Counted from the stretch's first letter, positions 1 through 56,084 are shown. The stretch is DNA of 64,000 bases from Macrostomum lignano (GCA_002269645.1 NIVC01002324.1:43222-107221), one strand, 5' to 3'. Notes: generated by a model from the sequence alone, not told the origin. Numbers and translations are program-made.

Positions 1-499
1 TCCTTGCTATCTCCTCTCATTCGTTTCTGTATCTTATCTTTATGAAATCCTTCCATACTTGTCAATATTTATTTACAGAAGTTTTGAAACATACCGTACC
101 TTGCTTCCAGCAATATATTATTATTGTCTCCTGCTGTCATAAAATTTCATCATCACGCAAACACGTGAGGCCCTACCTGACGCAAAGAACACTGTGCACC
201 CCAGAATTAAATACTTTTGAGCCTCAATACTACAATAGAAAGGAAAAGAAACTGCTCAATTTGCATTAACTACGAGTACTAGACCAAAGTACGCAGTGTT
301 AATCGCACCCCCATACGTATTAATTGTATCGTTGTTTGTCAGTGCCCTTGGCACTTTCGTCTCGCTGAGTTTAACACTCACTTGCCCAGCGAGGAATAAA
401 AAACCGGTTCAATCCGCTTCTTAATCACACTCGGGGGCATTTCGCATGCAGGCGCCTCCCGTGTCGTAGGTCTGCTCAGAAAGCGTGCTCAGAACAGGC

Positions 500-505
500 T
501 ATAAA
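500..505 (+). promoter_or_regulatory. TATA box of peptide gene 1
   Basis: TATAAA starts 101 nt upstream of ATG 601; similar spacing in the paralogs. Confidence 0.7.
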
Positions 506-600: not shown

Positions 601-846
601 ATGAAGTGGCAGCTGGCCACTCTTCTGCTCGCCTGCGTCGCCGTGGCCGTCATGGCGTCGCCGTCGGCCGAGGCCGAGGACTCGGACCTGGCCGAGCTCG
701 CCCAGCTGCAGGAGGCCATGGAGAGCGATGAGGTCGAGCACCTGCAGGCTAAAGGCCGCTACAGGCGCTTCAAGCGCAAGCTGAAGCGCGCCTACAAGCG
801 CTATCTGAAGAGGCACGGATACCGGAGGCGCGTGATTTATGGCTGA
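601..846 (+). CDS. Secreted pre-pro cationic peptide 1 (81 aa; K/R-rich amphipathic C-terminal peptide; AMP-like precursor)
   Basis: ORF MKWQLATLLLACVAVAVMA (signal) - SPSAEAEDSDLAELAQLQEAMESDEVEHLQAK (acidic pro) - GRYRRFKRKLKRAYKRYLKRHGYRRRVIYG*. TATAAA at 500-505, GC-rich coding-like codons, N-terminus homologous to the 3282-3581 and 14053-14370 genes. Confidence 0.9.
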   Translation: MKWQLATLLLACVAVAVMASPSAEAEDSDLAELAQLQEAMESDEVEHLQAKGRYRRFKRKLKRAYKRYLKRHGYRRRVIYG

Positions 847-3281: not shown

Positions 3282-3581
3282 TTAGCCATAGATGTGGTAG
3301 TGCCCGCGGAAGAAGCGCCGCCTGCGGAAGAAGCGCCGCCTGCTGAAGTAGCGCCTGCGGAAGTAGCGCCTGCGGAAGTAGCGACGCCTGCCGAACCGAA
3401 TCCTAAACTTCTCTTCCGGATCCGCGTCCTCGTCGGATTCGGCCAGATCGGGCTCGGCCATGTCGGCCAGGGCGGAGGCCACCTTTTCGAAGTCTTCGTC
3501 GTCTTCTTTGTGCTCAGCCGGGCTGGCGTAGACCGCCAGCGCCACGCACAGGAGGAGACCGAGGGCGAACTGCCACTTCAT
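3282..3581 (-). CDS. Secreted pre-pro cationic peptide 2 (99 aa; RRRYF/RRRFF-repeat C-terminal peptide)
   Basis: Likely start at MKWQFALGLLLCVALAVYA (3581), acidic pro ending PEEK, then FRIRFGRRRYFRRRYFRRRYFSRRRFFRRRRFFRGHYHIYG*. TATAAA on minus strand at 3669-3674; AATAAA on minus strand at 3203-3208. Confidence 0.9.
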   Translation of the reverse strand: MKWQFALGLLLCVALAVYASPAEHKEDDEDFEKVASALADMAEPDLAESDEDADPEEKFRIRFGRRRYFRRRYFRRRYFSRRRFFRRRRFFRGHYHIYG

Positions 3582-3668
3582 GGCTGCTGCTGAATTCAGA
3601 GAGATTCGCTTTGCAAAGTTGATCCCGTCTTGGGTCTTGGGGGCCGTTGTGAGCTCGAGGTGGTCGAC

Positions 3669-3704
3669 TTTATAGACCCGCAATCTGGGGCGGGGACACG
3701 TTTT
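3669..3704 (-). promoter_or_regulatory. TATA box plus AAAACGTG motif of peptide gene 2
   Basis: TATAAA at 3669-3674 and AAAACGTG at 3697-3704 (22 nt spacer); same arrangement in gene 4. Confidence 0.65.
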
Positions 3705-10452: not shown

Positions 10453-10632
10453 CTAGAACTGCGAGCGCCGGCGGAAGTAGCGATGCTTGCGGAACCGGAA
10501 CCGAATCCGGAACTTCTCTTGCAGATCCGTGTTCTCGTCGGACTCGGCCAACTCGGACTCGGCCAGGTCGGGCTCGGCCGCGTCCGGCTCGGCCAGGTCG
10601 GCCAGGGTGTTGGACAACTTTTCGAGGTCTTC
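10453..10632 (-). pseudogene. Pseudogene A of the cationic peptide family (gene-2-like; signal peptide and promoter deleted, C-terminus truncated)
   Basis: EDLEKLSNTLADLAEPDAAEPDLAESELAESDENTDLQEKFRIRFRFRKHRYFRRRSQF* aligns to the gene 2 pro and mature regions. At 10633 it joins sequence homologous to gene 2 upstream 3721-3750 (agccccaaaa.acgtgc.ctc), implying a deletion of ~220 nt. Confidence 0.8.
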
Positions 10633-10699
10633 AGACAGCCCCAAAAGACGTGCCCTCGACCTAGTTTCGGGAATTTCGGGTTAATGAAAAACCGGTTTC

Positions 10700-11120
10700 T
10701 CAACTTAATGGATTTACAATTAGAGTCAAGGTAAGGTACATCGTTTGAGGAAAGCCAAGAAAACGAAAGCAAACACGAACATTCACATTTTTTCTTTAAT
10801 AATACAAAATTACAATTTATTAATCTTCGCGCGACATGTTTCGCCGAATAATCGGCATCTTCAGGCAAAATATCGATGCAGAGAGATGGTAAATTTTTAA
10901 GTCTAGTAATCCAAAATGATGCAAGTATGGGTAACAGAGTTAGATGGCCCTAAATAAGAGGCAAGCGCATGGGGTCAGAACACCCTTAGATGGACACTCG
11001 CCCCTCTACCACCAAGTTGGATGTTCATGGTGGGCTTTAGCTTGTTTAATGTACAATGCCTCAAGAGTAGACAACTTCATACTCTGGCGGTTACGATCGA
11101 TAATTTTAATCGATAATTTA
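10700..11120 (-). mobile_element. Penelope-like retroelement 3' fragment (GIY-YIG C-terminus plus pLTR with hammerhead)
   Basis: IKIIDRNRQSMKLSTLEALYIKQ, then after a 1-nt frameshift LKPTMNIQLGGRGASVHLRVF* (stop 10975-10977); resembles the PLE endonuclease end. A hammerhead motif follows downstream on the same strand. Left boundary is approximate. Confidence 0.7.
10825..10870 (-). ncRNA. Minimal type-I hammerhead ribozyme (Penelope-type)
   Basis: Minus-strand RNA UUUUGC-CUGAAGA-U-GCCGA(UUAU)UCGGC-GAAA-CAUG-UC-GCGCGAAG: catalytic core, 5-bp stem II, palindromic ACAUGU stem III, GUC cleavage triplet at 10833-10835. Confidence 0.8.
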
Positions 11121-12269
11121 CGATCGACTTGTCTAAAAATTACTGGAGTCTTTTTATTGTTTTCGGCCGCACACAAGTCTGTCTTTTTATTGTTTTCGTT
11201 GCTTTTTATTTTTTTAAGCTTCATGCCAAAAAAGACCCTGCCGACTGCAACTCAAGTTTAGATTGCATCTGGCAGACACTTCTACGCATATTCTAATTGC
11301 GCCTTGTGCCTTTCGTATTCGAATGTGCCATTGGCATGTAGAGCGTGATTACGTAGCAGAGGTGGAGAATTGAACTGTTGTTGAATTTCGGTTCAAATGT
11401 GACCAACTAACTGTCTTAGCTGTTAAGAGCTCCGAGACTTGCTCAATAAATGATTCATCGCAAATGCTTTAAGCAGCAGTTACTCTTTCCTTTTTTTCGA
11501 ATCTCAAACTCAAAATGTCCTAATCAAAGTGAAAGCCTCTACACCTTTTTCAATTTACGAGTATTTTGGTAAGTGTGCAGTAAATATTGAAATACTCTCA
11601 TTCAATTCACACGGTTAATGGTAGCCTTTGGTGTAATGTGCATCCACCTAACGCGTCTTCGTTCGATTACTCAAATATAGTATTTGATAACGCAGACGCT
11701 TTAAATAAAGCCCGAGCAACAGATGATCGCCCCACTTCATTAACTTGAATTTAGATTTTACAGAAAAGCGTTTTTCCTATAAATATTTACTGCTTACTTA
11801 GGCAAAAAGATGACGCAGAGTCTTTTTAGAACTCATTTTAGAAACTAAAAACTAACGCTTACTCGTAACACACTACTCAAAGTAGGAGTAGAGCATGCCA
11901 GCAATTGACTTAAACTCTTTAAGAGTGTCTTTGAAAGAAAAGTTTTTATCAGTCTTCTAACAGAATAGCAAGATACTCGTACGTTCGTATTTAATAGTAG
12001 TGTTTAGGCTTGAATTCAGTAATTTGGTCACTTAAAATATAGTCAGATAAATTCGAGTTCATATAGCGCACTTGGTTTTAACATACATTTTTTAACATGG
12101 AGTTTGTATATCAGTAAGTCCGAAAACAAATGAAAAGTGAATCAGCTTTCATTAAATAACACCTTAGTGACACTCGATGACCTGCTTTTAGTCCGAAAAA
12201 AATTAATCAAGTGGGTCATAGAAACTAATAAGGTAGGCTCTACTTTAAAAAATCCAACGATACTTGGAT

Positions 12270-12440
12270 TCAAACTTCCAGGGCGAACTGCCACTTCATA
12301 GCTGCTGCTGCTGCGGTTGCTTTTGAAATCAAAGACGACAGCAAAATCGGTTCGCAGATTTTGCTCAACTTGGGGCCTGCTGGGCGCTCTCGGCCGGTCA
12401 TGGTGACGGTCACGTTTTCGTTGTATTGCTGTCATCTGGA
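12270..12440 (-). pseudogene. Pseudogene B of the peptide family (promoter/5'UTR plus first 7 codons only)
   Basis: ATGAAGTGGCAGTTCGCCCT (MKWQFAL) at 12280-12299, then EV* (stop 12270-12272). Upstream sequence aligns with gene 4 14370-14525 including AAAACGTG (12411-12418), but the TATA segment is missing. Confidence 0.8.
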
Positions 12441-14052: not shown

Positions 14053-14370
14053 TTAACCGTGGTAAGCGACGATGTGGACGTGGTGGCGACGGTGATAGCG
14101 CCTGCGGTAATAGCGCCGGTAAAAGCGCCTGCGGTAATAGCGCCTGCGGCTGTGGTACACAAAATAGTGGCGACGCCTACGACGACGGAAGAACAACTTC
14201 TCCTCGGGAGCCAGGTCGCTGTCCGATTCGGCCAACTCCGGCTCAGCCATGTCGGCCAGGGCATCGTTGGAAGCCTCGTCCAGGTTGTCGTCGTCGACTT
14301 GCTCAGCCGGGCTGGCGTAGACCGCCAGCGCCACGCACAGGAGGAGACCAAGGGCGAACTGCCACTTCAT
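14053..14370 (-). CDS. Secreted pre-pro cationic peptide 4 (105 aa; Arg/Tyr/His-rich C-terminal peptide)
   Basis: MKWQFALGLLLCVALAVYA signal (same protein sequence as gene 2), acidic pro ending PEEK, then LFFRRRRRRHYFVYHSRRRYYRRRFYRRYYRRRYHRRHHVHIVAYHG*. TATAAA on minus strand at 14464-14469; AATAAA on minus strand at 14012-14017. Confidence 0.9.
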   Translation of the reverse strand: MKWQFALGLLLCVALAVYASPAEQVDDDNLDEASNDALADMAEPELAESDSDLAPEEKLFFRRRRRRHYFVYHSRRRYYRRRFYRRYYRRRYHRRHHVHIVAYHG

Positions 14371-14463
14371 TGCTGCTGCTGCTTTAGAAATCAAAGACAA
14401 CAAACTCGGTTCGCAAAGATGCTACCCGACTTGGGAGCTCCTGGGCGCTTCACACAAGCCTTA

Positions 14464-14535
14464 TTTATAGACCCACTTTGATGGGGACGGTCACGTTTTC
14501 GCTTTATTATTGCCAGCTGGACCCCTTAACACGTG
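14464..14535 (-). promoter_or_regulatory. TATA box, AAAACGTG motif and CACGTG E-box of peptide gene 4
   Basis: TATAAA at 14464-14469, AAAACGTG at 14492-14499, CACGTG at 14530-14535. Confidence 0.65.
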
Positions 14536-22890: not shown

Positions 22891-23658
22891 TCCACCGCCT
22901 TAGAATACAGTTGTGTTCACTACACAGATTTGCTTTTTGTTCATAGTGCGTTAAAAGGGATTTCAGCATGGACATATTCGATACAGAATTCGGCCGAGGA
23001 AAGACACTACAGGGACAGGAACAGCCAAAATTTTACAGGAACTTCGATTGCTTTCTTGCCGGTCTCTGGGAGAATTTCATGCAATACTAGACTTGATAAA
23101 CTTGTGTGTGCAACTCGGATAAAACGCTACATTTTGCAGCGATTTGCACGCATTTAGACTACTTTTAAGTAGTCCACCGAGTTCACAGTGAGCCTTAACA
23201 TGCAGTTAATCGCATCTTGGCTTAGAACGAACTCAACTTCAAACGACGAGTTTTTTGGAAATTTGTAGATAAGCAGGGAGCTCTTTAATATTGAACTGTA
23301 AACTTACAGTTTCGATACGCAGTCTATTTATTTCAGATGTTAAAAGACAGAAATATTTGAAATATTTGTTAGTACTTGTAAACTGGTAAAGATCGCCTTG
23401 AGCGTCTTGCTTAACTTGAAATCTGAGATCCGTGAGTAAAAATGGATTGAGCAATTGGAGCTGGTTGAAAGAAAGAGAATTACACGTGTTAAGCGGTCAA
23501 TATAGTTGTCTAGTTAGAAAGATAGACAGTTCAATGGAAAATTTGTGGTGGGTAAAGCTGATAACAAAATCAATATGCTAAGTAATTAGTCAGAGTTCAT
23601 CAAGATGTTAAGTAGAGTTTCTTTCTGTGTTGATTTCTTCGGGCCGTTAATCCAATTT

Positions 23659-24105
23659 TTAGCCATAGTACCTGCGCCTGTAGTACCTGCGCCTGTAGTA
23701 CCTACGCCTGTAGTACCTCCGCCTGTAGTAGCGCCTGGACCTGTAGTATCTGCGCCTGTAGTAGCGCCTGTAGCGCCTGTAGTGGCGCCTATAGTAGCGC
23801 CTGGCCCTGTAGTATCTGCGCCTGTAGTAGCGCCTGTAGTAGCGCCTGAGAGCTCGCCTGTAGCGCCTGTAGTAGCGCCGTCTCCGGAATCGGTACTTCT
23901 GCTCGACAGGGCTCACCTCACTTGATTCAGACTCGAGAGCGTCGCTGCTGGGCGACTCCAGCTCCATCAGGGCGTTTTCGAGGGCTTCGGGCTCGTCGGA
24001 CTCGGCCTCGACATCCGCAGGCTTCGCCGGCTGCTCCTCGGCAGCCACGCAGAAGACCGCCAGGCCGAGCACCAGAAGGCTCAGGCACAGCAGCTGCAGC
24101 TTCAT
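23659..24105 (-). CDS. Secreted pre-pro cationic peptide 5 (148 aa; 78-aa RRRYY-repeat C-terminal peptide)
   Basis: MKLQLLCLSLLVLGLAVFCVAA signal, acidic pro ending VEQK, then a 78-aa region with 43 R and 28 Y (manual count) ending RRRYYG*. TATAAG on minus strand at 24197-24202; AAAACGTG at 24223-24230. Confidence 0.9.
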   Translation of the reverse strand: MKLQLLCLSLLVLGLAVFCVAAEEQPAKPADVEAESDEPEALENALMELESPSSDALESESSEVSPVEQKYRFRRRRYYRRYRRALRRYYRRYYRRRYYRARRYYRRHYRRYRRYYRRRYYRSRRYYRRRYYRRRYYRRRYYRRRYYG

Positions 24106-24196: not shown

Positions 24197-24254
24197 CTTA
24201 TAGAAAACCGGTTCGGTCAATTCACGTTTTCTGGTTGATCAGCAGCGCCACGTG
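24197..24254 (-). promoter_or_regulatory. TATA-like box, AAAACGTG motif and CACGTG E-box of peptide gene 5
   Basis: TATAAG at 24197-24202 (97 nt from the ATG), AAAACGTG at 24223-24230, CACGTG at 24249-24254. Confidence 0.6.
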
Positions 24255-26836: not shown

Positions 26837-27853
26837 TCAAGGCTGAGCGGCGGCGGCGGCGGCATTCGATCTGCTGTCGGGTTCATCCAATGACGGATGC
26901 ACCGCCGACGACTTAAAGACGCACAGGGCGCGCCGAGCGATTTTGGAGTAGCTGCGACGGAACTGCGGATTCAACAGGCCGTAGATGATCGGGTTCAGGG
27001 TTGAGTTGAACGCCGCAAGCCAGATGATCAGCTTGTGCGGAATCCTGCCCACGGGAGCTACAAACCTGTCGATGTACACGTGGATGCTGTAGGGACCCCA
27101 GCACAGGTTGAACACAATGAAGGCGGTCAGCACTGGGACCAGAGCCTTCCACTCCTTGCTGAAACTGGTTGCATCAGTTTGCAGCGAAGCCTCGGCTTCC
27201 TTGCGAATACGGAACAGTTTGAAAAACAGACTGATGTAGCAGCCAGCAGCAAGAAGCGATGGAAACGCTACGCCCAGCAAGGTCAACAAGAAGCTCAACG
27301 CGAAGAACGACTCGTCGTCGTAATAGAAACAGATGTACACTTCCCGGATGTAGCCAAAGCCTTTTAAACCCCAGAAGAGTCCGCTAACAGAAAGCCAGAC
27401 CAGCCAGCAGGCCAAGCAGTAGCCAATCACCCTAGCGTTGGTGAAGTACCTCTGGTACACGACTTTGTGCAGAACGCACAGGTTCCGAGCAACGGCAATC
27501 AACGTGAAGCTGAAGTTGGACACGCCACTGGCTGAGAACAACAAGAAAGCATTCAGCTGGCAAACACTTTTGTGAAAGATGTTTGTCTCTCCGATTCGAT
27601 TGGCCAGAATGGTTGGCACAAAATAGGAGCACACAAGGAGATCCGCCAGGCCGATGTTCACCACCAGGAAGTTGGTGGCCGACTTCAGCTGTTTGAAGCG
27701 CGTGACAGACAGGATTGTGAGCAAGTTTCCGCAGACGCCAACTGTGATTACAAGCACTAGAAAAAACACGTCCAGGGCCAGGGGAGTGGGGTCTCTGTCC
27801 TCGTCCTCGAGACCGTCCAGTGGTAAAGAAGTGCTGTTACTTGAGTTGCTCAT
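26837..27853 (-). CDS. Single-exon class A (rhodopsin-like) GPCR, melatonin-receptor/Tre1/Moody-like, 338 aa
   Basis: Seven hydrophobic segments with GN (TM1), LADL (TM2), ARN in place of DRY, CWGP (TM6) and NSTLNPIIYGLLNPQFR (NPxxY). No opsin lysine in TM7. Subfamily call is by motif resemblance only. Confidence 0.92.
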   Translation of the reverse strand: MSNSSNSTSLPLDGLEDEDRDPTPLALDVFFLVLVITVGVCGNLLTILSVTRFKQLKSATNFLVVNIGLADLLVCSYFVPTILANRIGETNIFHKSVCQLNAFLLFSASGVSNFSFTLIAVARNLCVLHKVVYQRYFTNARVIGYCLACWLVWLSVSGLFWGLKGFGYIREVYICFYYDDESFFALSFLLTLLGVAFPSLLAAGCYISLFFKLFRIRKEAEASLQTDATSFSKEWKALVPVLTAFIVFNLCWGPYSIHVYIDRFVAPVGRIPHKLIIWLAAFNSTLNPIIYGLLNPQFRRSYSKIARRALCVFKSSAVHPSLDEPDSRSNAAAAAAQP

Positions 27854-38527: not shown

Positions 38528-40372
38528 GGGGAATTGCTAGGATGTCAAGGCTGTTGAGGGGAATCGCTAAGATGTCAAGGCTGTTGAGGGGAATTGCTAA
38601 GATGTCAAGGCTGTTGAGGGGAATTGCTAAGATGTCAAGGCTGTTGAGGGGAATTGCTAAGATGTCAAGGCTGTTGAGGGGAATTGCTAAGATGTCAAGG
38701 CTGTTGAGGGGAATTGCTTAGATGTCAAGGCTGTTGAGGGGAATCGCTAAGATGTCAAGGCTGTTGAGGGGAATCGCTAAGATGTCAAGGCTGTTGAGGG
38801 GAATTGCTAAGATGTCAAGGCTGTTGAGGGGAATTGCTAAGATGTCAAGGCTGTTGAGGGGAATTGCTAAGATGTCAAGGCTGTTGAGGGGAATTGCTTA
38901 GATGTCAAGGCTGTTGAGGGGAATCGCTAAGATGTCAAGGCTGTTGAGGGGAATTGCTAAGATGGCAAGGCTGTTGAGGGGAATCGCTAAGATGTCAAGG
39001 CTGTTGAGGGGAATTGCTAAGATGTCAAGGCTGATGGGGGGAATTGCTAAGATGTCAAGGCTGTTGAGGGGAATCGCTAAGATGTCAAGGCTGTTGAGGG
39101 GAATTGCTAAGATGTCAAGGCTGATGGGGGAATTGCTAAGATGTCAAGGCTGTTGAGGGGAATTGCTAAGATGTCAAGGCTGTTGAGGGGAATTGCTAAG
39201 ATGTCAAGGCTGATGGGGGAATTGCTAAGATGTCAAGGCTGTTGAGGGGAATTGCTAAGATGTCAAGGCTGTTGAGGGGAATTGCTAAGATGTCAAGGCT
39301 GTTGAGGGGAATCGCTAAGATGTCAAGGCTGTTGAGGGGAATCGCTAAGATGTCAAGGCTGTTGAGGGGAATTGCTAAGATGTCAAGGCTGTTGAGGGGA
39401 ATTGCTAAGATGTCAAGGCTGTTGAGGGGAATCGCTAAGATGTCAAGGCTGTTGAGGGGAATTGCTAAGATGTCAAGGCTGTTGAGGGGAATTGCTAAGA
39501 TGTCAAGGCTGTTGAGGGGAATTGCTAAGATGTCAAGGCTGATGGGGGGAATTGCTAAGATGTCAAGGCTGTTGAGGGGAATCGCTAAGATGTCAAGGCT
39601 GTTGAGGGGAATTGCTAAGATGTCAAGGCTGATGGGGGGAATTGCTAAGATGTCAAGGCTGTTGAGGGGAATTGCTAAGATGTCAAGGCTGTTGAGGGGA
39701 ATTGCTAAGATGTCAAGGCTGATGGGGGAATTGCTAAGATGTCAAGGCTGTTGAGGGGAATCGCTAAGATGTCAAGGCTGTTGAGGGGAATTGCTTAGAT
39801 GTCAAGGCTGTTGAGGGGAATCGCTAAGATGTCAAGGCTGTTGAGGGGAATCGCTAAGATGTCAAGGCTGTTGAGGGAATTGCTAAGATGTCAAGGCTGT
39901 TGAGGGGAATTGCTAAGATGTCAAGGCTGTTGAGGGGAATTGCTAAGATGTCAAGGCTGTTGAGGGGAATTGTTAAGATGTCAAGGCTGTTGAGGGGAAT
40001 CGCTAAGATGTCAAGGCTGTTGAGGGGAATCGCTAAGATGTCAAGGCTGATGGGGGGAATTGCTAAGATGTCAAGGCTGTTGAGGGGAATTGCTAAGATG
40101 TCAAGGCTGTTGAGGGGAATTGCTAAGATGTCAAGGCTGATGGGGGGAATTGCTAAGATGTCAAGGCTGTTGAGGGGAATTGCTAAGATGTCAAGGCTGA
40201 TGGGGGGAATTGCTAAGATGTCAAGGCTGTTGAGGGGAATTGCTAAGATGTCAAGGCTGTTGAGGGGAATTGCTAAGATGTCAAGGCTGTTGAGGGGAAT
40301 TGCTAAGATGTCAAGGCTGTTGAGGGGAATTGCTAAGATGTCAAGGCTGTTGAGGGGAATTGCTAAGATGTC
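38528..40372. repeat. 30-bp satellite GCTAAGATGTCAAGGCTGTTGAGGGGAATT, ~61 copies
   Basis: Directly visible. Confidence 0.98.
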
Positions 40373-40854
40373 ACTGCTCAAGGGTCACTGCAATCCTTTA
40401 CCCGTCTCGTCACTCATTAATTATCAAGACTTATCAATACTAAGAGCAAGATTCTTCCTATTTGAACGGCAGTCGTGAGTCTTCCCAAACAAAGCCTCAG
40501 TGTGTGAGAGGGGCACACAAAGCCAAGCTTTTTTTATTTTATACCCCACGTTTTTGCTGGTTCAGCTGCCTTTCTCAGCTCAGCTCGGTTGTGTCACGAC
40601 TCACACAATTCACTGTAATCTCACGCTATCATGCTTGTGAGAATTTATCCAGCTGTTGCAGACATGACTTCAACTGCTTCCTATGGGTGTTGTATTACGA
40701 AATAAGTGCCATATGCATTTGCTCATTTTACTACCTAAGATCGAATCTGAACCTTCGAATGGAATCAAAAGAGTTTTTATGGCTCTTCGGCTTGCTTGGC
40801 TTCAGAGTCAGTTTTAGTGAGGAGAATCAAAAGCAAGTCAGGGAAATGAAGTAC

Positions 40855-43800
40855 AGTCAGGGGAGTTAGAGTCAGAGGAATTAGAGTCAGGGGAATTAGA
40901 GTCAGGGGAATTAGAGTCAGGGGAATTAGAGTCAGGGGAATTAGAGTCAGGGAAATTAGAGTCAGGTAAATTAAAGTCAGGGAAATTAGAGCTAGGGGAA
41001 TTAGAGTCAGGGAAATTACAGTCAAGGGAGTTAAAGTCAAAGGAATTAGAGTCAGGGGAATTAGAGTCAGGGGAATTAGAGTCAGGGGAATTAGAGTCAG
41101 GGGAATTAGAGTCAGGGGAATTAGAGTCAGGGGAATTAGAGTCAGGGGAGTTAGAGTCAGGGGAATTAGAGTCAGGGGAATTAGAGTCAGGGGAATTAGA
41201 GTCAGGGGAGTTAGAGTCAGGGGAATTAGAGTCAGGGGAGTTAGAGTCAGGGGAATTAGAGTCAGGGGATTTAGAGTCAGGGGAATTAGAGTCAGGGGAT
41301 TTAGAGTCAGGGGAATTAGAGTCAGGGGAATTAGAGTCAGGGGAATTAGAGTCAGGGGAATTAGAGTCAGGGGAATTAGAGTCAGGGGAATTAGAGTCAG
41401 GGGAATTAGAGTCAGGGGAATTAGAGTCAGGGGAATTAGAGTCAGGGGAATTAGAGTCAGGGGAATTAGAGTCAGGGGAATTAGAGTCAGGGGAATTAGA
41501 GTCAGGGGAATTAGAGTCAGGGGAATTAGAGTCAGGGGAATTAGAGTCAGGGGAATTAGAGTCAGGGGAATTAGAGTCAGGGGAATTAGAGTCAGGGGAA
41601 TTAGAGTCAGGGGAATTAGAGTCTGGGGAATTAGAGTCAGGGGAATTAGAGTCAGGACAGTTAGAGTCAGGGGAGTTAAAGTCAGGGGAATTAGAGTCAG
41701 GGGAATTAGAGTCAGGGGAATTAGAGTCAGGGGAATTAGAGTCAGGGGAATTAGAGTCAGGGGAATTAGAGTCAGGGGAATTAGAGTCAGGGGAATTAGA
41801 ATCAGGGGAATTAGAGTCAGGGGAATTAGAGTCAGGGGAATTAGAGTCAGGGAAGTTAGAGTCAGGGGAATTAGAGTCAGGGGAATTAGAGTCAGGGGAA
41901 TTAGAGTCAGGGGAATTAGAGTCAGGGGAATTAAAGTCAGGGGAATTAGAGTCAGGGGAGTTAGAGTCAGGGGAATTAGAGTCAGGGGATTTAGAGTCAG
42001 GGGAATTAGAGTCAGGGGATTTAGAGTCAGGGGAATTAGAGTCAGGACAGTTAGAGTCAGGGGAGTTAGAGTCAGGGGAATTAGAGTCAGGGGAATTAGA
42101 GTCAGGGGAATTAGAGTCAGGGGAATTAGAGTCAGGGGAATTAGAGTCAGGGGAATTAGAGTCAGGACAGTTAGAGTCAGGGGAATTAGAGTCAGGGGAA
42201 TTAGAGTCAGGGGATTTAGAGTCAGGGGAATTAGAGTCAGGACAGTTAGAGTCAGGGGAATTAGAGTCAGGGGAATTAGAGTCAGGGGAGTTAGAGTCAG
42301 GGGAATTAGAGTCAGGGGAGTTAGAGTCAGGGGAATTAGAGTCAGGGGAATTAGAGTCAGGACAGTTAGAGTCAGGGGAATTAGAGTCAGGACAGTTAGA
42401 GTCAGGGGAATTAGAGTCAGGACAGTTAGAGTCAGGGAAATTAGAGTCAGGACAGTTAGAGTCAGGGGAATTAGAGTCAGGGGAGTTAGAGTCAGGGGAA
42501 TTAGAGTCAGGGGAATTAGAGTCAGGGGAATTAGAGTCAGAGGAATTAGAGTCAGGGGAATTAGAGTCAGGGGAATTAGAGTCAGGGGAATTAGAGTCAG
42601 GGAAATTAGAGTCAGGTAAATTAAAGTCAGGGAAATTAGAGCTAGGGGAATTAGAGTCAGGGAAATTACAGTCAAGGGAGTTAAAGTCAAAGGAATTAGA
42701 GTCAGGGGAGTTAGAGTCAGGGGAATTAGAGTCAGGGGATTTAGAGTCAGGGGAATTAGAGTCAGGACAGTTAGAGTCAGGGGAATTAGAGTCAGGACAG
42801 TTAGAGTCAGGGGAATTAGAGTCAGGGGAATTAGAGTCAGGTGATTTAGAGTCAGGGGAATTAGAGTCAGGAGAATTAGAGTCAGGACAGTTAGAGTCAG
42901 GGGAATTAGAGTCAGGACGTTAGAGTCAGGGGAATTAGAGTCAGGACAGTTAGAGTCAGGGGAATTAGAGTCAGGACAGTTAGAGTCAGGGGAATTAGAG
43001 TCAGGGGAGTTAGAGTCAGGGGAATTAGAGTCAGGGGAATTAGAGTCAGGGGAATTAGAGTCAGGGGAATTAGAGTTAGGGGAATTAGAGTCAGGGGAAT
43101 TACAGTCAGGGGAATTAGAGTCAGGGGAATTAGAGTCAGGGGAGTTAGAGTCAGAGGAATTAGAGTCAGGGGAATTAGAGTCAGGGGAATTAGAGTCAGG
43201 GGAATTAGAGTCAGGGGAATTAGAGTCAGGGGAATTAGAGTCAGGGGAATTAGAGTCAGGGAAATTAGAGTCAGGTAAATTAAAGTCAGGGAAATTAGAG
43301 CTAGGGGAATTAGAGTCAGGGAAATTACAGTCAAGGGAGTTAAAGTCAAAGGAATTAGAGTCAGGGGAATTAGAGTCAGGGGAATTAGAGTCAGGGGATT
43401 TAGAGTCAGGGGAATTAGAGTCAGGGGAATTACAGTCAGGGGAATTAGAGTCAGGGGAATTAGAGTCAGGACAGTTAGAGTCAGGGGAATTAGAGTCAGG
43501 GGAATTAGAGTCAGGGGAATTAGAGTCAGGGGAATTAGAGTCAGGGGAATTAGAGTCAGGGGAATTAAAGTCAGGGGAATTAGAGTCAGGGGAGTTAGAG
43601 TCAGGGGAATTAGAGTCAGGGGATTTAGAGTCAGGGGAATTAGAGTCAGGGGATTTAGAGTCAGGGGAATTAGAGTCAGGACAGTTAGAGCCAGGGGAGT
43701 TAGAGTCAGGGGAGTTAGAGTCAGGGGAATTAGAGTCAGGGGAGTTAGAGTCAGGGGAATTAGAGTCAGGGGAATTAGAGTCAGGGGATTTAGAGTCAGG

Positions 43801-46800
43801 GGAATTAGAGTCAGGGGAATTAGAGTCAGGACAGTTAGAGTCAGGGGAATTAGAGTCAGGGGAGTTAGAGTCAGGGGATTTAGAGTCAGGGGAATTAGAG
43901 TCAGGGGAATTAGAGTCAGGGGAATTAGAGTCAGGACAGTTAGAGTCAGGGGAATTAGAGTCAGGGGAATTAGAGTCAGGGGAATTAGAGTCAGGGGAAT
44001 TAGAGTCAGGGGAATTAGAGTCAGGGGAATTAGAGTCAGGGGAGTTAGAGTCAGGGGAATTAGAGTCAGGGGAATTAGAGTCAGGGGAATTAGAGTCAGG
44101 GGAGTTAGAGTCAGGGGAATTAGAGTCAGGGGAGTTAGAGTCAGGGGAATTAGAGTCAGGGGATTTAGAGTCAGGGGAATTAGAGTCAGGGGATTTAGAG
44201 TCAGGGGAATTAGAGTCAGGGGAATTAGAGTCAGGGGAATTAGAGTCAGGGGAATTAGAGTCAGGGGAATTAGAGTCAGGGGAATTAGAGTCAGGGGAAT
44301 TAGAGTCAGGGGAATTAGAGTCAGGGGAATTAGAGTCAGGGGAATTAGAGTCAGGGGAATTAGAGTCAGGGGAATTAGAGTCAGGGGAATTAGAGTCAGG
44401 GGAATTAGAGTCAGGGGATTTAGAGTCAGGGGAATTAGAGTCAGGGGAATTAGAGTCAGGGGAATTAGAGTCAGGGGAATTAGAGTCAGGGGAATTAGAG
44501 TCAGGGGAATTAGAGTCAGGGGAATTAGAGTCTGGGGAATTAGAGTCAGGGGAATTAGAGTCAGGACAGTTAGAGTCAGGGGAGTTAAAGTCAGGGGAAT
44601 TAGAGTCAGGGGAATTAGAGTCAGGGGAATTAGAGTCAGGGGAATTAGAGTCAGGGGAATTAGAGTCAGGGGAATTAGAGTCAGGGGAATTAGAGTCAGG
44701 GGAATTAGAATCAGGGGAATTAGAGTCAGGGGAATTAGAGTCAGGGGAATTAGAGTCAGGGAAGTTAGAGTCAGGGGAATTAGAGTCAGGGGAATTAGAG
44801 TCAGGGGAATTAGAGTCAGGGGAATTAGAGTCAGGGGAATTAAAGTCAGGGGAATTAGAGTCAGGGGAGTTAGAGTCAGGGGAATTAGAGTCAGGGGATT
44901 TAGAGTCAGGGGAATTAGAGTCAGGGGATTTAGAGTCAGGGGAATTAGAGTCAGGACAGTTAGAGTCAGGGGAATTAGAGTCAGGGGAGTTAGAGTCAGG
45001 GGAATTAGAGTCAGGGGAGTTAGAGTCAGGGGAATTAGAGTCAGGGGAGTTAGAGTCAGGGGAATTAGAGTCAGGGGAATTAGAGTCAGGACAGTTAGAG
45101 TCAGGGGAATTAGAGTCAGGACAGTTAGAGTCAGGGGAATTAGAGTCAGGACAGTTAGAGTCAGGGAAATTAGAGTCAGGACAGTTAGAGTCAGGGGAAT
45201 TAGAGTCAGGGGAGTTAGAGTCAGGGGAATTAGAGTCAGGGGAATTAGAGTCAGGGGAATTAGAGTCAGAGGAATTAGAGTCAGGGGAATTAGAGTCAGG
45301 GGAATTAGAGTCAGGGGAATTAGAGTCAGGGAAATTAGAGTCAGGTAAATTAAAGTCAGGGAAATTAGAGCTAGGGGAATTAGAGTCAGGGAAATTACAG
45401 TCAAGGGAGTTAAAGTCAAAGGAATTAGAGTCAGGGGAGTTAGAGTCAGGGGAATTAGAGTCAGGGGATTTAGAGTCAGGGGAATTAGAGTCAGGGGAAT
45501 TAGAGTCAGGGAAATTAGAGTCAGGGGAGTTAGAGTCAGGGGAATTAGAGTCAGGGGATTTAGAGTCAGGGGAATTAGAGTCAGGGGATTTAGAGTCAGG
45601 GGAATTAGAGTCAGGACAGTTAGAGTCAGGGGAATTAGAGTCAGGACAGTTAGAGTCAGGGGAATTAGAGTCAGGGGAATTAGAGTCAGGTGATTTAGAG
45701 TCAGGGGAATTAGAGTCAGGAGAATTAGAGTCAGGACAGTTAGAGTCAGGGGAATTAGAGTCAGGACGTTAGAGTCAGGGGAATTAGAGTCAGGACAGTT
45801 AGAGTCAGGGGAATTAGAGTCAGGACAGTTAGAGTCAGGGGAATTAGAGTCAGGGGAATTAGAGTCAGGGGAATTAGAGTCAGGGGAATTAGAGTCAGGG
45901 GAATTAGAGTCAGGGGAATTAGAGTTAGGGGAATTAGAGTCAGGGGAATTACAGTCAGGGGAATTAGAGTCAGGGGAATTAGAGTCAGGGGAGTTAGAGT
46001 CAGAGGAATTAGAGTCAGGGGAATTAGAGTCAGGGGAATTAGAGTCAGGGGAATTAGAGTCAGGGGAATTAGAGTCAGGGGAGTCATTAGAGTCAGGGGA
46101 ATTAGAGTCAGGGAAAGAGTTAGAGTCAGGTAAATTAAAGTCAGGGAAATTAGAGCTAGGGGAATTAGAGTCAGGGAAATTACAGTCAAGGGAGTTAAAG
46201 TCAAAGGAATTAGAGTCAGGGGAATTAGAGTCAGGGGAATTAGAGTCAGGGGATTTAGAGTCAGGGGAATTAGAGTCAGGGGAATTACAGTCAGGGGAAT
46301 TAGAGTCAGGGGAATTAGAGTCAGGACAGTTAGAGTCAGGGGAATTAGAGTCAGGGGAATTAGAGTCAGGGGAATTAGAGTCAGGGGAATTAGAGTCAGG
46401 GGAATTAGAGTCAGGGGAATTAAAGTCAGGGGAATTAGAGTCAGGGGAGTTAGAGTCAGGGGAATTAGAGTCAGGGGATTTAGAGTCAGGGGAATTAGAG
46501 TCAGGGGATTTAGAGTCAGGGGAATTAGAGTCAGGACAGTTAGAGTCAGGGGAGTTAGAGTCAGGGGAGTTAGAGTCAGGGGAATTAGAGTCAGGGGAGT
46601 TAGAGTCAGGGGAATTAGAGTCAGGGGAATTAGAGTCAGGGGATTTAGAGTCAGGGGAATTAGAGTCAGGGGAATTAGAGTCAGGACAGTTAGAGTCAGG
46701 GGAATTAGAGTCAGGGGAGTTAGAGTCAGGGGATTTAGAGTCAGGGGAATTAGAGTCAGGGGAATTAGAGTCAGGGGAATTAGAGTCAGGACAGTTAGAG

Positions 46801-49800
46801 TCAGGGGAATTAGAGTCAGGGGAATTAGAGTCAGGGGAATTAGAGTCAGGGGAATTAGAGTCAGGGGAATTAGAGTCAGGGGAATTAGAGTCAGGGGAGT
46901 TAGAGTCAGGGGAATTAGAGTCAGGGGAATTAGAGTCAGGGGAATTAGAGTCAGGGGAGTTAGAGTCAGGGGAATTAGAGTCAGGGGAGTTAGAGTCAGG
47001 GGAATTAGAGTCAGGGGATTTAGAGTCAGGGGAATTAGAGTCAGGGGATTTAGAGTCAGGGGAATTAGAGTCAGGGGAATTAGAGTCAGGGGAATTAGAG
47101 TCAGGGGAATTAGAGTCAGGGGAATTAGAGTCAGGGGAATTAGAGTCAGGGGAATTAGAGTCAGGGGAATTAGAGTCAGGGGAATTAGAGTCAGGGGAAT
47201 TAGAGTCAGGGGAATTAGAGTCAGGGGAATTAGAGTCAGGGGAATTAGAGTCAGGGGAATTAGAGTCAGGGGAATTAGATTCAGGGGAATTAGAGTCAGG
47301 GGAGTTAGAGTCAGGGGAATTAGAGTCAGGGGAATTAGAGTCAGGGGAATTACAGTCAGGACAGTTAGAGTCAGGGGAATTAGAGTCAGGGGAATTAGAG
47401 TCAGGGGAATTAGAGTCAGGACAGTTAGAGTCAGGGGAATTAGAGTCAGGGGAATTAGAGTCAATGGAGTTAGAGTCAGGGGAATTAGAGTCAGGGGAAT
47501 TAGAGTCAGGAGAATTAGAGTCAGGGGAATTAAAGTCAGGGGAATTAGAGTCAGGGGAATTAGAGTCAGGGGAATTAGAGTCAGGGGAATTAGAGTCAGG
47601 GGAGTTAGAGTCAGGGGAATTGGAGTCAGGGGAGTTAGAGTCAGGGGAATTAGAGTCAGGGGAATTAGAGTCAGGGGAATTAGAGTCAGGGGAATTAGAG
47701 TCAGGGGAATTAGAGTCAGGGGAATTAGAGTCAGGGGAATTAGAGTCTGGGGAATTAGAGTCAGGGGAATTAGAGTCAGGACAGTTAGAGTCAGGGGAGT
47801 TAAAGTCAGGGGAATTAGAGTCAGGGGAATTAGAGTCAGGACAGTTAGAGTCAGGGGAATTAGAGTCAGGGGAGTTAGAGTCAGGGGAATTAGAGTCAGG
47901 GGAATTAGAGTCAGGGGAATTAGAGTCAGGGGAATTAAAGTCAGGGGAATTAGAGTCAGGGGAGTTAGAGTCAGGGGAATTAGAGTCAGGGGAATTAGAG
48001 TCAGGGGATTTAGAGTCAGGGGAATTAGAGTCAGGGGAATTAGAGTCAGGACAGTTAGAGTCAGGGGAATTAGAGTCAGGGGAGTTAGAGTCAGGGGAAT
48101 TAGAGTCAGGGGAATTAGAGTCAGGGGAATTAGAGTCAGGGGAATTAAAGTCAGGGGAATTAGAGTCAGGGGAGTTAGAGTCAGGGGAATTAGAGTCAGG
48201 GGAATTAGAGTCAGGGGAGTTAGAGTCAGGGGAATTAGAGTCAGGGGAGTTAGAGTCAGGGGAATTAGAGTCAGGGGAATTAGAGTCAGGGGAATTAGAG
48301 TCAGGGGAATTAAAGTCAGGGGAATTAGAGTCAGGACAGTTAGAGTCAGGACAGTTAGAGTCAGGGGAATTAGAGTCAGGGGAATTAGAGTCAGGGGAAT
48401 TAGAGTCAGGGGAGTTAGAGTCAGGGGAATTAGAGTCAGGGGATTTAGAGTCAGGGGAATTAGAGTCAGGGGATTTAGAGTCAGGGGAATTAGAGTCAGG
48501 GGAATTAGAGTCAGGGGAATTAGAGTCAGGGGAATTAGAGTCAGGGGAATTAGAGCCAGGGGAATTAGAGTCAGGGGAATTAGAGTCAGGGGAATTAGAG
48601 TCAGGGGAATTAGAGTCTGGGGAATTAGAGTCAGGGGAATTAGAGTCAGGACAGTTAGAGTCAGGGGAATTAGAGTCAGGGGAATTAGAGTCAGGGGAAT
48701 TAGAGTCAATGGAGTTAGAGTCAGGGGAATTAGAGTCAGGGGAATTAGAGTCAGGAGAATTAGAGTCAGGGGAATTAAAGTCAGGGGAATTAGAGTCAGG
48801 GGAATTAGAGTCAGGGGAATTAGAGTCAGGGGAATTAGAGTCAGGGGAGTTAGAGTCAGGGGAATTGGAGTCAGGGGAGTTAGAGTCAGGGGAATTAGAG
48901 TCAGGGGAATTAGAGTCAGGGGAATTAGAGTCAGGGGAATTAGAGTCAGGGGAATTAGAGTCAGGGGAATTAGAGTCAGGGGAATTAGAGTCTGGGGAAT
49001 TAGAGTCAGGGGAATTAGAGTCAGGACAGTTAGAGTCAGGGGAGTTAAAGTCAGGGGAATTAGAGTCAGGGGAATTAGAGTCAGGACAGTTAGAGTCAGG
49101 GGAATTAGAGTCAGGGGAGTTAGAGTCAGGGGAATTAGAGTCAGGGGAATTAGAGTCAGGGGAATTAGAGTCAGGGGAATTAAAGTCAGGGGAATTAGAG
49201 TCAGGGGAGTTAGAGTCAGGGGAATTAGAGTCAGGGGAATTAGAGTCAGGGGATTTAGAGTCAGGGGAATTAGAGTCAGGGGAATTAGAGTCAGGACAGT
49301 TAGAGTCAGGGGAATTAGAGTCAGGGGAGTTAGAGTCAGGGGAATTAGAGTCAGGGGAATTAGAGTCAGGGGAATTAGAGTCAGGGGAATTAAAGTCAGG
49401 GGAATTAGAGTCAGGGGAGTTAGAGTCAGGGGAATTAGAGTCAGGGGAATTAGAGTCAGGGGAGTTAGAGTCAGGGGAATTAGAGTCAGGGGAGTTAGAG
49501 TCAGGGGAATTAGAGTCAGGGGAATTAGAGTCAGGGGAATTAGAGTCAGGGGAATTAAAGTCAGGGGAATTAGAGTCAGGACAGTTAGAGTCAGGACAGT
49601 TAGAGTCAGGGGAATTAGAGTCAGGGGAATTAGAGTCAGGGGAGTTAGAGTCAGGGGAATTAGAGTCAGGGGATTTAGAGTCAGGGGAATTAGAGTCAGG
49701 GGATTTAGAGTCAGGGGAATTAGAGTCAGGGGAATTAGAGTCAGGGGAATTAGAGTCAGGGGAATTAGAGTCAGGGGAATTAGAGCCAGGGGAATTAGAG

Positions 49801-50455
49801 TCAGGGGAATTAGAGTCAGGGGAATTAGAGTCAGGGGAATTAGAGTCTGGGGAATTAGAGTCAGGGGAATTAGAGTCAGGACAGTTAGAGTCAGGGGAGT
49901 TAAAGTCAGGGGAATTAGAGTCAGGGGAATTAGAGTCAGGGGAATTAGAGTCAGGGGAATTAGAGTCAGGGGAATTAGAGTCAGGGGAATTAGAGTCAGG
50001 GGAATTAGAGTCAGGGGAATTAGAATCAGGGGAATTAGAGTCAGGGGAATTAGAGTCAGGGGAATTAGAGTCAGGGGAGTTAGAGTCAGGGGAATTAGAG
50101 TCAGGGGAATTAGAGTCAGGGGAATTAGAGTCAGGGGAATTAGAGTCAGGGGAATTAAAGTCAGGGGAATTAGAGTCAGGGGAGTTAGAGTCAGGGGAAT
50201 TAGAGTCAGTTGATTTAGAGTCAGGGGAATTAGAGTCAGGGGATTTAGAGTCAGGGGAATTAGAGTCAGGACAGTTAGAGTCAGGGGAGTTAGAGTCAGG
50301 GGAATTAGAGTCAGGGGAATTAGAGTCAGGGGAATTAGAGTCAGGGGAATTAGAGTCAGGGGAATTAGAGTCAGGGGAATTAGAGTCAGGACAGTTAGAG
50401 TCAGGGGAATTAGAGTCAGGGGAATTAGAGTCAGGACAGTTAGAGTCAGTGGAAT
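40855..50455. repeat. 9.6-kb 15-bp satellite (GAATTAGAGTCAGGG)n, ~640 copies, with higher-order duplications
   Basis: Directly visible. A variant cassette recurs at ~40951, 42601, 43260, 45330 and 46110. Confidence 0.99.
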
Positions 50456-50939
50456 CAGAAAAATAGCATGTATGTTGTGTATCAAAGACTTCTTTCTGTC
50501 ATGGTTTCTTCGTGATCAATTTTGTTTTAGAAACATATCTAACTGTGAGTAACAAAAAACTGGTGAATGAATGAAAGCTAGCAACATAAGAGGATTTGAT
50601 ATTTATTGTGAGTCAATGCTTCAATTCCGACTCAGCTCTTTTTCCCATTATAGTTGCCATCCTCACGGTAGACTGTTTCTTTTATCTCTGCATATGCCTG
50701 GCATTTGTCGACCTCTGAAGGGCTCGGTTGGGTCCCCCATTCCGCCAAAACCTGACCACTTGAAGGCGTCAGCAACCAGCTGTCCTGAACCGGAGATGTT
50801 AATCAAATTCGGTCGTGAAAAAAAACTATGCAATAATTTCAAATATTCGAAGCGCTTTTGACCTCATCAAATATAGTTATATGATTTTGCGTAAGTGTAC
50901 AACTAATTTGTAGAATAGAAAAGTTGATCGGAAAGAAAG

Positions 50940-53568: not shown

Positions 53569-54381
53569 GTGTTTATCTCTCTCTCTTACTGCAGAGAAGC
53601 TGAGTCATCCAGCAAAAAAATTTCAAGTTTGTGGCGTTTGCAGCAGTCCAGGCAGGCCACACAGAGAGAGATAGGGGCTGGGGGAAGGACCCAACTTTAT
53701 TCCCCAACTTTAACCCGTTCATCCTCCAGCTGCAGCGAAGCGGGGCTCCGTGATACGGGCCTCCCGTGGGGGGGGGGCTGACTCATCCACATCGCCCTCC
53801 GGGGCCTCGGGGAAATCAAGCGAGGTCTTTGTTAAGCCCACCCACACGCGACCCTACAGGGGAGGGGGGGGGGGCTGCGGCTTCCTCATGGAGACCCAGA
53901 GCCAGAGCCTGGAGAAACGACTCCTTCCCCAGACCTCCCCATTTACAGACAACTATAGGCTGACTTCTAACTGTATGACCCGAATTTTGTGAGTTTGTTG
54001 GTGCTGCTGTTTCTGAAGACATTGATTGTTTACTATTTCCCGCCAGCCAGCCTATAGTTGTCTAAAAAGACCGACAAAGAGTCTCTATAGAAGAGCTCCA
54101 GGTTTTACATTTAAAGGCTCCTTGGCTCCCCAGTCACCCCTGCACGTGTCGAGCGACATCTGGTCGCAGGAGCCCCCATCCCATCCCATCCCATCCCATC
54201 CCCATTGCCGCCCCAACTGTCCTCTCTCGCTCTCTCCGCAGACCTCATTCGCCCCAACTAAGTGGCTCGCAATGCCCGTCCCGGGAGGTCTTTGTTGTTT
54301 GGGGAGCAGCTTTATCCCCCCCCCCCGCAAGCCCATATAACTGGCGAAGCGGAACCCGTCATTAACCTGGCAGGCGGGGCA

Positions 54382-54780
54382 ATGTCAGAGGCGGAGCTGC
54401 AGCATCAGGAGCCGCGTGATGAAGAGCTAGACCTGGACGACGAAAAGCTGGCAGGCGTGGACGCCTCCGGCCGGACCATCGTGGTAAACCCGAACCCGAT
54501 GCATGAGATCATGAAGCGAGCGGAGCAGCTGCGGAGCGAGACCTCCGACGGGGTGGTGTACCCGTGCGAGTACTGCCAGAAGGTGTTCAAGTTCAAGTAC
54601 GAGTACGAGAGGCACGCCAAGATCCACAGCGGCGACCGGCCCTGGCAGTGCCCGGAGTGCATGAAGACCTTCAGCCGCAAGGACAACATGCGAGCGCACA
54701 TGAAGATCCACACCGGGGAGCTGGTCAGGCATATCTGCCACCTGTGCGGCAAATCCTATGGGAGAAAGTACGACTTGCAG
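54382..54780 (+). CDS. C2H2 zinc-finger protein, first identifiable coding exon (fingers 1-2 and half of 3)
   Basis: CEYCQKVFKFKYEYERHAKIH-SGDRP-CPECMKTFSRKDNMRAHMKIH-TGE-CHLCGKSYGRKYDLQ|gtgagt. The start ATG at 54382 is tentative. Confidence 0.88.
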
Positions 54781-54974
54781 GTGAGTCTAGTGGAGCATTG
54801 GTTTATGGTGTCTTGGAGTCTTTATTGGTCCCAATGCGACCCCATCTGATCCCAATGTGATCCATAAACCAATGTGAACCTAAACTGACCCCAGTGTGAT
54901 ACCAGTGTGACTCCCATATTAATCACATATTAATGTGATCCCAGACGAATTCGGCCTCATCCTAGTTTTTTTCC

Positions 54975-56052
<1,078 letters not shown>

Positions 56053-56084
56053 TGAGTAGCTGCTGGTTTTAGATTTGCTTTCTC

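Follow-up and report, generated by a model that had tools for sequence, protein, structure and literature searches.

Gene 5 and its cluster

A 64-kb stretch of Macrostomum lignano DNA (the window; a 100% match to contig NIVC01002324.1) was analyzed, with attention to a gene whose predicted secreted product is made almost entirely of arginine and tyrosine. This gene, gene 5 (g5), is a single-exon open reading frame (ORF) on the minus strand at 23659..24105, stop included; 148 codons and a TAA encode 148 amino acids, and a GenBank model has exactly equal bounds. The coding sequence (CDS) has a GC content of 0.62, and of 0.85 at third codon positions (GC3), versus ~0.45 GC in its surroundings. 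Its precursor consists of a 22-residue signal-like segment, a 48-residue acidic pro-region and a 78-residue C-terminal tail. The predicted signal peptide, MKLQLLCLSLLVLGLAVFCVAA (codons 1-22, 24040..24105), has a hydrophobic core and V-A-A at positions -3 to -1 of the putative cleavage site, and aligns with the signal MKWQ[LF]ALGLLLCxALAV of a wider family. The pro-region (codons 23-70, 23896..24039) contains 13 Glu, 3 Asp and 2 Lys, giving a net charge of -14, and ends in VEQK. It can be aligned with the pro-regions of paralogues through ALxxLxxP and ES[DS]E motifs and the terminal Lys; the prepro region matches that of the neighboring gene g4 with a BLASTP E value of 0.002. The tail (codons 71-148, 23662..23895) terminates in Gly, a putative amide donor. 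We infer from this layout that the pro-region is cut off and that the C terminus is amidated.

Exact translation bears out the composition that an earlier note on this DNA had reported, namely 43 Arg and 28 Tyr among 78 residues (71/78, or 91%) and an ending in RRRYY repeats. The remaining residues are 1 Phe, 2 Ala, 1 Leu, 1 His, 1 Ser and 1 Gly, the net charge is +43, and the C terminus consists of four RRRYY units followed by Gly and the stop (RRRYYG*). This Arg/Tyr richness is far beyond chance. When the six frames of the window were scanned for stretches rich in Arg/Lys and aromatic residues, eight ORFs were recovered: the five family genes of the window and three unrelated ORFs. Four family genes scored 21-24 and the fragment of the fifth (g3) scored 16; the unrelated ORFs scored 14-15.

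The tail comprises 6 RRRYY, 5 RRYY and 2 RRY units, along with a few variants, and Tandem Repeats Finder (TRF) reports periods of 9, 12, 15, 33 and 45 nt in the array, all multiples of 3. The youngest part of the array (23666..23763, minus strand) holds ~6 copies of the 15-nt unit AGG-CGN-AGG-TAC-TAC, which encodes RRRYY, and the last four units differ at synonymous third positions only (CGG/CGT/CGC and TAC/TAT). A related unit is present at 3-5 copies in two neighbors: g2 has three copies of CGC-AGG-CGC-TAC-TTC (RRRYF) and g4 has CGC-AGG-CGC-TAT-TAC (RRRYY) with variants, while the gene 5 tail is built of AGG-CGC-(AGG/AGA)-TAC-TAC. Judged by these codons, the tail is an in-frame amplification, to ~15 units, of a unit already in the g2/g4/g5 sub-cluster. 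The 33-nt higher-order repeat, together with the terminal run of near-identical 15-nt units, indicates at least two rounds of expansion. Variation within the array comprises 11 synonymous-variant Arg/Tyr codons versus 6 replaced residues. Random substitution in an Arg/Tyr unit would be synonymous in 20-27% of cases and would create a stop in 4-9%. A conservative count of 10/16 synonymous changes gives P ~2e-4 to 7e-3, a range that must be read with the non-independence of the units in mind. The bias toward silent changes suggests that the tail is under constraint.

Searches for recognizable domains and structures were negative. A Pfam scan of genes 1, 2, 4 and 5 gave nothing above threshold, a PDB sequence search with the gene 5 tail gave no match even at E <= 10, and an Rfam scan of positions 20-28 kb of the window gave no match. 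An AlphaFold2 single-sequence model of gene 5 shows one long helix (residues 66-147; predicted local distance difference test score, pLDDT, 65-85; predicted template modeling score, pTM, 0.32), which we regard as the usual default for charged low-complexity sequence and as uninformative.

Gene 5 was found on three contigs of GCA_002269645.1 (the Mlig_3_7 assembly) with equal repeat length. An exact-protein look-up places it on two of them, that of the window and NIVC01000112.1; on the latter, gene 5 and ~5 kb around it are nucleotide-identical to the window, and the farther flanks are 1-3% different. The third copy, on NIVC01000866.1, lies in DNA that is ~98% identical; four substitutions distinguish its 447-nt CDS, which is free of indels. 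Three of the substitutions are synonymous (L11, E68 and Y132) and one is R128M. There are six gaps in the 1.7 kb around this copy, and the length of the array is kept. An assembly artefact in repeat length, which the earlier note had named as a danger to its proposal, was rejected as the source of the array on the strength of the equal arrays on three contigs.

The GenBank annotation of the assembly draws on no source other than transcript assemblies, both RNA-seq-guided and de novo (PMC5730564), and it contains models for gene 5, g1, g2 and g4. These models are not simply the calls of an ORF finder, because the annotation on these contigs includes intron-containing genes, because the gene 5 model on NIVC01000866.1 is a 5'-partial CDS with a non-Met first codon 45 nt upstream of the ATG, and because a long receptor-like ORF nearby was left unmodeled. 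From its models in a transcript-built annotation, gene 5 is apparently transcribed. Exact-protein look-ups for genes 1, 2, 4 and 5 returned no RNA-derived Logan contigs. The unmodeled ORF (26837..27853, minus strand), 2.7 kb upstream of gene 5, is intronless and encodes 338 amino acids with a rhodopsin-type seven-transmembrane match (Pfam 7tm_1, E = 3e-33); it possibly represents a G protein-coupled receptor that is expressed weakly or has gone unannotated.

Five family genes (g1, g2, g3, g4 and g5) occupy the first ~24 kb of the window. The product of g1 (601..846, plus strand) has 81 residues and a Lys/Arg/Tyr tail ending in VIYG. That of g2 (3282..3581, minus strand) has 99 residues, with three RRRYF units and one RRRFF in its tail, and that of g4 (14053..14370, minus strand) has 105 residues and the tail LFFRRRRRRHYFVYHSRRRYYRRRFYRRYYRRRYHRRHHVHIVAYHG. 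The remaining member, g3 (10453..12299, minus strand), is a pseudogene in which ~1.6 kb of inserted DNA separates the ATG and MKWQFAL (12279..12299) from the remainder of the pro-region and the short tail that follows it (10453..10650). Paralogue g4 clusters with BOX15_Mlig025063g1, whose annotated product (P0007) is 96 residues long, versus 105 from its range on NIVC01000866.1 (L012, 10001..10318). The model excises 27 nt of the Arg/Tyr repeat of g4 as an 'intron', which suggests either that the transcript came from a shorter allele or copy or that the repeat collapsed when transcripts were assembled.

The intact genes share a promoter module. Upstream of gene 5, AAAACGTG-N18-TCTATAAG lies at 24197..24230 (minus strand), with the TATA box ~95 nt before the ATG; the corresponding modules are at 480..505 (g1), 3669..3704 (g2) and 14464..14499 (g4). 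A composite motif, AAA[AG]CGTG-N10-35-[CT]ATAA[AG], occurs four times in the window versus 0.16 expected from shuffles. All four occurrences are ahead of g1, g2, g4 and g5, on the correct strand and 85-100 nt upstream of the ATG; across the family, the TATA box of the module is about 85-110 nt before the ATG. The module is also found at the third gene 5 copy (NIVC01000866.1) and ahead of a distant member, P0035, and was thereby seen in all five genes for which upstream DNA was read (g1, g2, g4, g5 and P0035). Upstream of the pseudogene g3, the AAAACGTG motif is kept and the TATA box is lost. With a hydrophobic N-terminal signal, a conserved family architecture and the family promoter, gene 5 is a real gene and has the features expected of a secretory-pathway precursor, as the earlier note had proposed.

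Long antisense ORFs with PAPVV or PAEVA repeats face the Arg/aromatic tails of g5 (23605..23925), g2 (3294..3593) and g4 (14059..14481), all on the plus strand, and none is supported as a gene. The one opposite gene 5, which has PAPVV repeats, was rejected as a gene and is treated as a mechanical mirror of the Arg/Tyr codons, because such mirrors also lie opposite g2 and g4, while the promoter and the family homology are on the minus strand.

A family with a conserved signal and variable tails

An exhaustive search of 1.84 billion representative proteins was made with a profile of the signal and pro-region. The first version gave 8 matches, all of them M. lignano hypothetical proteins. A richer profile gave 24 clusters, all from M. 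lignano except for one Logan contig, and every one has the family layout. Profiles with gene 5 among their sequences recover this family alone. On this sequence evidence, gene 5 is the most diverged and most extreme member of an undescribed M. lignano family of more than 25 'hypothetical proteins', prepropeptides of the MKWQLALGLLLC type that include BOX15_Mlig025063g1, Mlig027113g1, Mlig026085g1 and Mlig010792g3. The distribution of the profile matches indicates that the family is restricted to the species or genus. The Logan contig (SRR31628392; 541..813 of L011) carries a member with the signal MRWQLALGLLLC, a PRVR[LM]-repeat tail and, upstream, AAAACGTG with a TATA-like module; both the family and its habit of repeat expansion may therefore reach beyond the reference strain.

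Family precursors start with MKWQ[LF]ALGLLLC and continue into an acidic propiece that has an ALxxLxE[PS] core and ends in Lys or Lys-Lys. What follows is a hypervariable cationic/aromatic peptide, with Gly before the stop in nearly all intact members (11/13 of those tabulated). The mature parts range from 6 to 78 residues and are unrelated in sequence; apart from gene 5, they are mostly short (8-47 aa). Example tails are FVRVRVRL-G, IFRVRVHI-G, WLRVRARVRI-G, GFHVHFH-G, WFVRWRRRRWRFRFFR-G, KWRIKSACKIFRRLLHLARKCYAKK-G and WRRRRRFRWRKAIRVAGKVAKAVL, and that of P0035 is (PRVRL)n. Several relatives (WRIKSACKIFRRLLHLARKCYAKK, WFVRWRRRRWRFRFFR and FVRVRVRL) look like ordinary cationic amphipathic peptides. 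Among members on other contigs (P0015-P0017, P0023-P0034, P0036 and P0037), many are very short, putatively amidated peptides in which hydrophobic and basic residues strictly alternate. The alternating members (FVRVRVRL, IFRVRVHI, WLRVRARVRI, FIHIHF and GFHVHFH) have the pattern of an amphipathic beta-strand, and one would end in an RF-amide.

Conservation falls along the precursor. Among g2, g4 and Mlig027113, the last of which is at another locus, the signal is 96-98% identical at the nucleotide level, identity in the pro-regions drops to 68-71%, most of the differences being non-synonymous, and the tails cannot be aligned. Pro-region and tail charges are -14/+19 in both g2 and g4, -9/+15 in g1, and -10/+11, -8/+10, -12/+8 and -15/+8 in others, so that most members with cationic tails are roughly balanced. 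At -14/+43, gene 5 is by far the largest charge outlier. The earlier note was right that the pro-region resembles those of genes 2 and 4 in charge and that it cannot offset the tail.

Proposed function and its competitors

We propose that gene 5 is a functional, transcribed and intronless gene of an antimicrobial peptide (AMP)-type family, and that its product is a protamine-like, secreted, polycationic defence effector. We give this reading roughly even odds (a probability of about 0.5). The family is placed among host-defence and effector peptide families by analogy, not homology. The analogy is drawn because its members combine a signal, an anionic propiece, a basic site and an amidation-ready cationic tail, because the signal is conserved and the mature part variable, and because the genes are tandem paralogues of restricted distribution. 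A tripartite precursor with a conserved signal and a hypervariable mature part was indeed found across the multigene family. Several relatives, but not gene 5, have a mature peptide that is amphipathic and in substantial part hydrophobic.

Under this proposal, the precursor would enter the secretory pathway and the propiece would be removed after Lys70. In storage, the amidated polycation would be kept together with a further polyanion. Once released into the gut or onto an epithelial or mucus surface, it would bind and condense bacterial envelopes, nucleic acids and acidic glycans through the charge of Arg and through Arg/Tyr cation-pi contacts; Tyr would add cation-pi and pi-pi contacts to a condensation of polyanions like that by protamine or oligo-arginine. 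It would act as an antimicrobial or antifouling effector, not as an amphipathic pore former. Secretion, processing, amidation, tissue and activity are all predicted from sequence.

Several observations weigh against this proposal. No amphipathic periodicity was seen in the gene 5 tail, whose spectrum lacks a dominant peak at 100 degrees or at 160-180 degrees. Aliphatic residues are nearly absent from it, unlike in typical lytic AMPs, and Phe, Ala and Leu together account for only 4/78 positions. The tail contains many RR and RRR motifs, which are potential prohormone-convertase sites; cleavage at them in secretory granules may leave no intact 78-mer. The signal and pro-region of gene 5 are the most diverged of the family (the signal has ~55% nucleotide identity), a divergence that could reflect a shifted function or relaxed constraint. 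The evidence for selection on the array, suggestive as it is, comes from small counts of repeat units with shared ancestry. No canonical poly(A) signal was found within 300 nt after the stop; the first AATAAA, a possible signal, is at 23327..23332 (minus strand), 327 nt downstream. Finally, the family, its locus tags and its sequences are unmentioned in the full-text literature and in the supplements of the M. lignano transcriptomic papers that were searched.

The first two of these points bear on how the peptide might act. Condensing of polyanions is more plausible than pore lysis for gene 5, because its tail is without amphipathic periodicity and nearly without aliphatic residues. The uncompensated charge, moreover, implies that the peptide is stored with a polyanion, carries modifications that mask its charge, or is rapidly released. 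The same features would suit a structural or material protein that coacervates with a polyanion to serve as a glue, a trap, a rhabdite-like or mucus matrix, or a packer of granules, possibly with conversion of Tyr to 3,4-dihydroxyphenylalanine (DOPA). The composition (+43, 36% Tyr and no amphipathic pattern) is ideal for coacervation, and uncompensated charge implies a polyanionic partner in storage. M. lignano itself depends for adhesion on Mlig-ap1, a polycationic protein rich in Lys/Arg, and its adhesion is disturbed by polyanions as well as polycations (PMC6410801). Even so, we find a material role doubtful. The relatives of gene 5 are short (8-47 aa) cationic peptides, not material-forming proteins; the known adhesive proteins of M. 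lignano are huge, multidomain and dissimilar, and none was among the matches of the homology and profile searches. Nor was any sign found of DOPA use in M. lignano adhesion, and PMC6410801 names DOPA in its reference list only. Defence is ranked as more likely than an adhesive or structural role because of the family context. The preference in the earlier note for a coacervate or glue over a simple lytic AMP thus holds in part: condensation of a polyanion is the more plausible action, but the sequence gives no sign of a glue, trap or granule matrix, and the family context favors defence.

The precursor layout is open to another interpretation. Neuropeptide precursors, too, are built with a signal peptide, a Lys or Lys-Lys site and a C-terminal Gly, and the gene 5 family could supply signalling or reproductive peptides, neuropeptide-like or seminal-fluid, with the Arg runs of gene 5 serving as convertase sites that yield very small products. 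Some relatives would give amides of 6-10 residues, such as IFRVHVRF-NH2 (with an RFamide end), FVRVRVRL-NH2 and GFHVHFH-NH2. Some Hydra neuropeptides double as antimicrobial peptides (PMC10945409), and fast evolution of small, secreted proteins confined to one lineage is typical of Macrostomum reproductive genes (PMC7336406). Neuropeptides are, however, normally conserved among paralogues and orthologues, whereas here no conserved bioactive peptide accompanies the basic site and Gly, and the mature region (6 to 78 aa) is the least conserved. If every Arg run of gene 5 were cleaved, the products would be mostly Tyr-Tyr dipeptides, for which no role in signalling is known, and the family identifiers tested are absent from the supplements of a three-species reproduction study. 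We consider this explanation unlikely.

It is also conceivable that gene 5 is an evolutionary by-product, a recent expansion of a coding minisatellite in a drifting, redundant paralogue whose product is weakly expressed, untranslated or functionless. The window is packed with minisatellites, the terminal units of the array are near-identical and hence young, the neighboring paralogue g3 is already a pseudogene, and the repeat length of g4 varies between models. Gene 5 also breaks the rough charge balance of its family and lacks an AATAAA close after its stop. On the other side, the ORF (with one R128M in the third copy), the signal peptide, the TATA box and the upstream motif are intact on three contigs, and a transcript-based gene model exists. 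Variation in the array and between copies leans synonymous, and the length of the array was kept while the flanks gained indels. A by-product therefore seems to us distinctly unlikely.

The defence reading has a more specific form, in which gene 5 would encode an 'extracellular protamine': a secreted, amidated Arg/Tyr sticker polymer, derived from an AMP gene through expansion of a coding repeat, that by liquid-liquid phase separation condenses microbial surfaces, extracellular DNA or acidic mucus glycans into a trapping or gluing coacervate. We offer this form only tentatively and think it rather improbable. If true, the peptide would act by a physical mechanism new among animal defence and secretory peptides, with the Arg/Tyr sticker grammar at work outside the cell.

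Other features of the window lie beyond the cluster. The window is unusually rich in minisatellites, with 25 TRF rows of score >400. About 62 copies of a 30-nt satellite (38528..40373) precede a 9.6-kb satellite made of ~640 copies of the 15-nt unit AGTCAGGGGAATTAG. Across this block (38528..50459), GC skew reaches ~0.69, and very long spurious ORFs of ELESG and LTLIP repeats occur in several frames. Farther along, at 54262..56055 (plus strand), a 64/96-nt tandem repeat interrupts ORFs with C2H2 zinc-finger motifs, and acidic and poly-Gln stretches come after them; the ORFs are probably exons of a zinc-finger gene.

Significance and comparison with known systems

We know of almost nothing on the secreted defence peptides of free-living flatworms. 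M. lignano is genetically tractable, with transgenesis, RNA interference and in situ hybridization available. The family is a clean example of diversification in peptide families with conserved signals and hypervariable tails. An Arg/Tyr polycation is unusual among secreted animal peptides, and in gene 5 in-frame minisatellite expansion has taken a peptide beyond the usual AMP design space to a +43 Arg/Tyr polymer. A stable product would make gene 5 a natural system in which to test extracellular condensation driven by Arg and Tyr. It also poses a cell-biological puzzle, the packaging of a peptide with only a third of its charge neutralized by the propiece. FVRVRVRL-NH2 and (RRRYY)n offer simple templates for the design of synthetic peptides, either antimicrobial or coacervate-forming.

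In a homology search with the whole gene 5 protein, nothing in the databases matched the tail except bacterial metagenome proteins (P0001-P0006 and P0008; L009, 8001..8465; L010). These proteins have a Sec or twin-arginine signal, a spacer and a C-terminal (R2-3 Y1-2)n tail. They were rejected as homologues of gene 5: the contigs are bacterial, the match is compositional and there is no common signal or pro-region. This bacterial group of Arg/Tyr-rich secreted proteins seems to be a convergent class.

Among marine adhesives, mussel foot protein-3 (mfp-3), sandcastle-worm cement and the KR regions of Mlig-ap1 (PMC6410801) resemble the predicted product of gene 5 in being secreted and cationic, and mfp-3 is also Tyr-rich. 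Polycationic adhesives of this kind work with polyanions by coacervation or electrostatic cohesion. They differ in that they are Gly/Asn/Lys-containing or very large and multidomain, and are found in adhesive glands, whereas gene 5 encodes a small AMP-like prepropeptide. DOPA, moreover, defines the mussel and sandcastle-worm proteins but not Mlig-ap1. Database searches and an exhaustive profile search revealed no relationship of gene 5 to known adhesive proteins (mfp-3, Pc proteins and Mlig-ap1).

The AMP families of Hydra are charge-bipartite, clustered, rich in paralogues and taxonomically restricted (PMC10945409). Its arminins and periculins share with the flatworm family an anionic N-terminal part joined to a strongly cationic C-terminal part, tandem paralogues, confinement to one genus and the absence of a Pfam domain. 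They belong to another phylum and are unrelated, however, and the C-terminal peptides of arminins are ~30 residues long, rich in Lys/Arg and hydrophobic, not low-complexity.

In frog preprodermaseptins and in families of the conotoxin type, the signal is conserved, even at synonymous sites, and the mature peptide is hypervariable. Preprodermaseptins have an acidic propiece ending in a basic site, a cationic mature peptide, often a Gly for amidation, and many tandem paralogues. The flatworm family shares this plan, with its signal, acidic propiece, basic site, cationic hypervariable peptide, Gly and tandem paralogues. There is no sequence homology between the two, and the flatworm precursors are apparently cut at a single Lys or at Lys-Lys, not at Lys-Arg. 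The mature part of gene 5 is a 78-residue Arg/Tyr repeat, in contrast to the amphipathic helix of 10-35 residues in dermaseptins.

In composition, gene 5 resembles the protamines. Its tail is 55% Arg, of low complexity and a polycation of net +43; protamines are >50% Arg and condense polyanions. Protamine is itself antimicrobial. Protamines, however, have neither a signal peptide nor an acidic secretory propiece, act in the sperm nucleus and lack Tyr. Gene 5 differs from them in its family-typical hydrophobic signal, its C-terminal Gly and the 36% Tyr of its tail.

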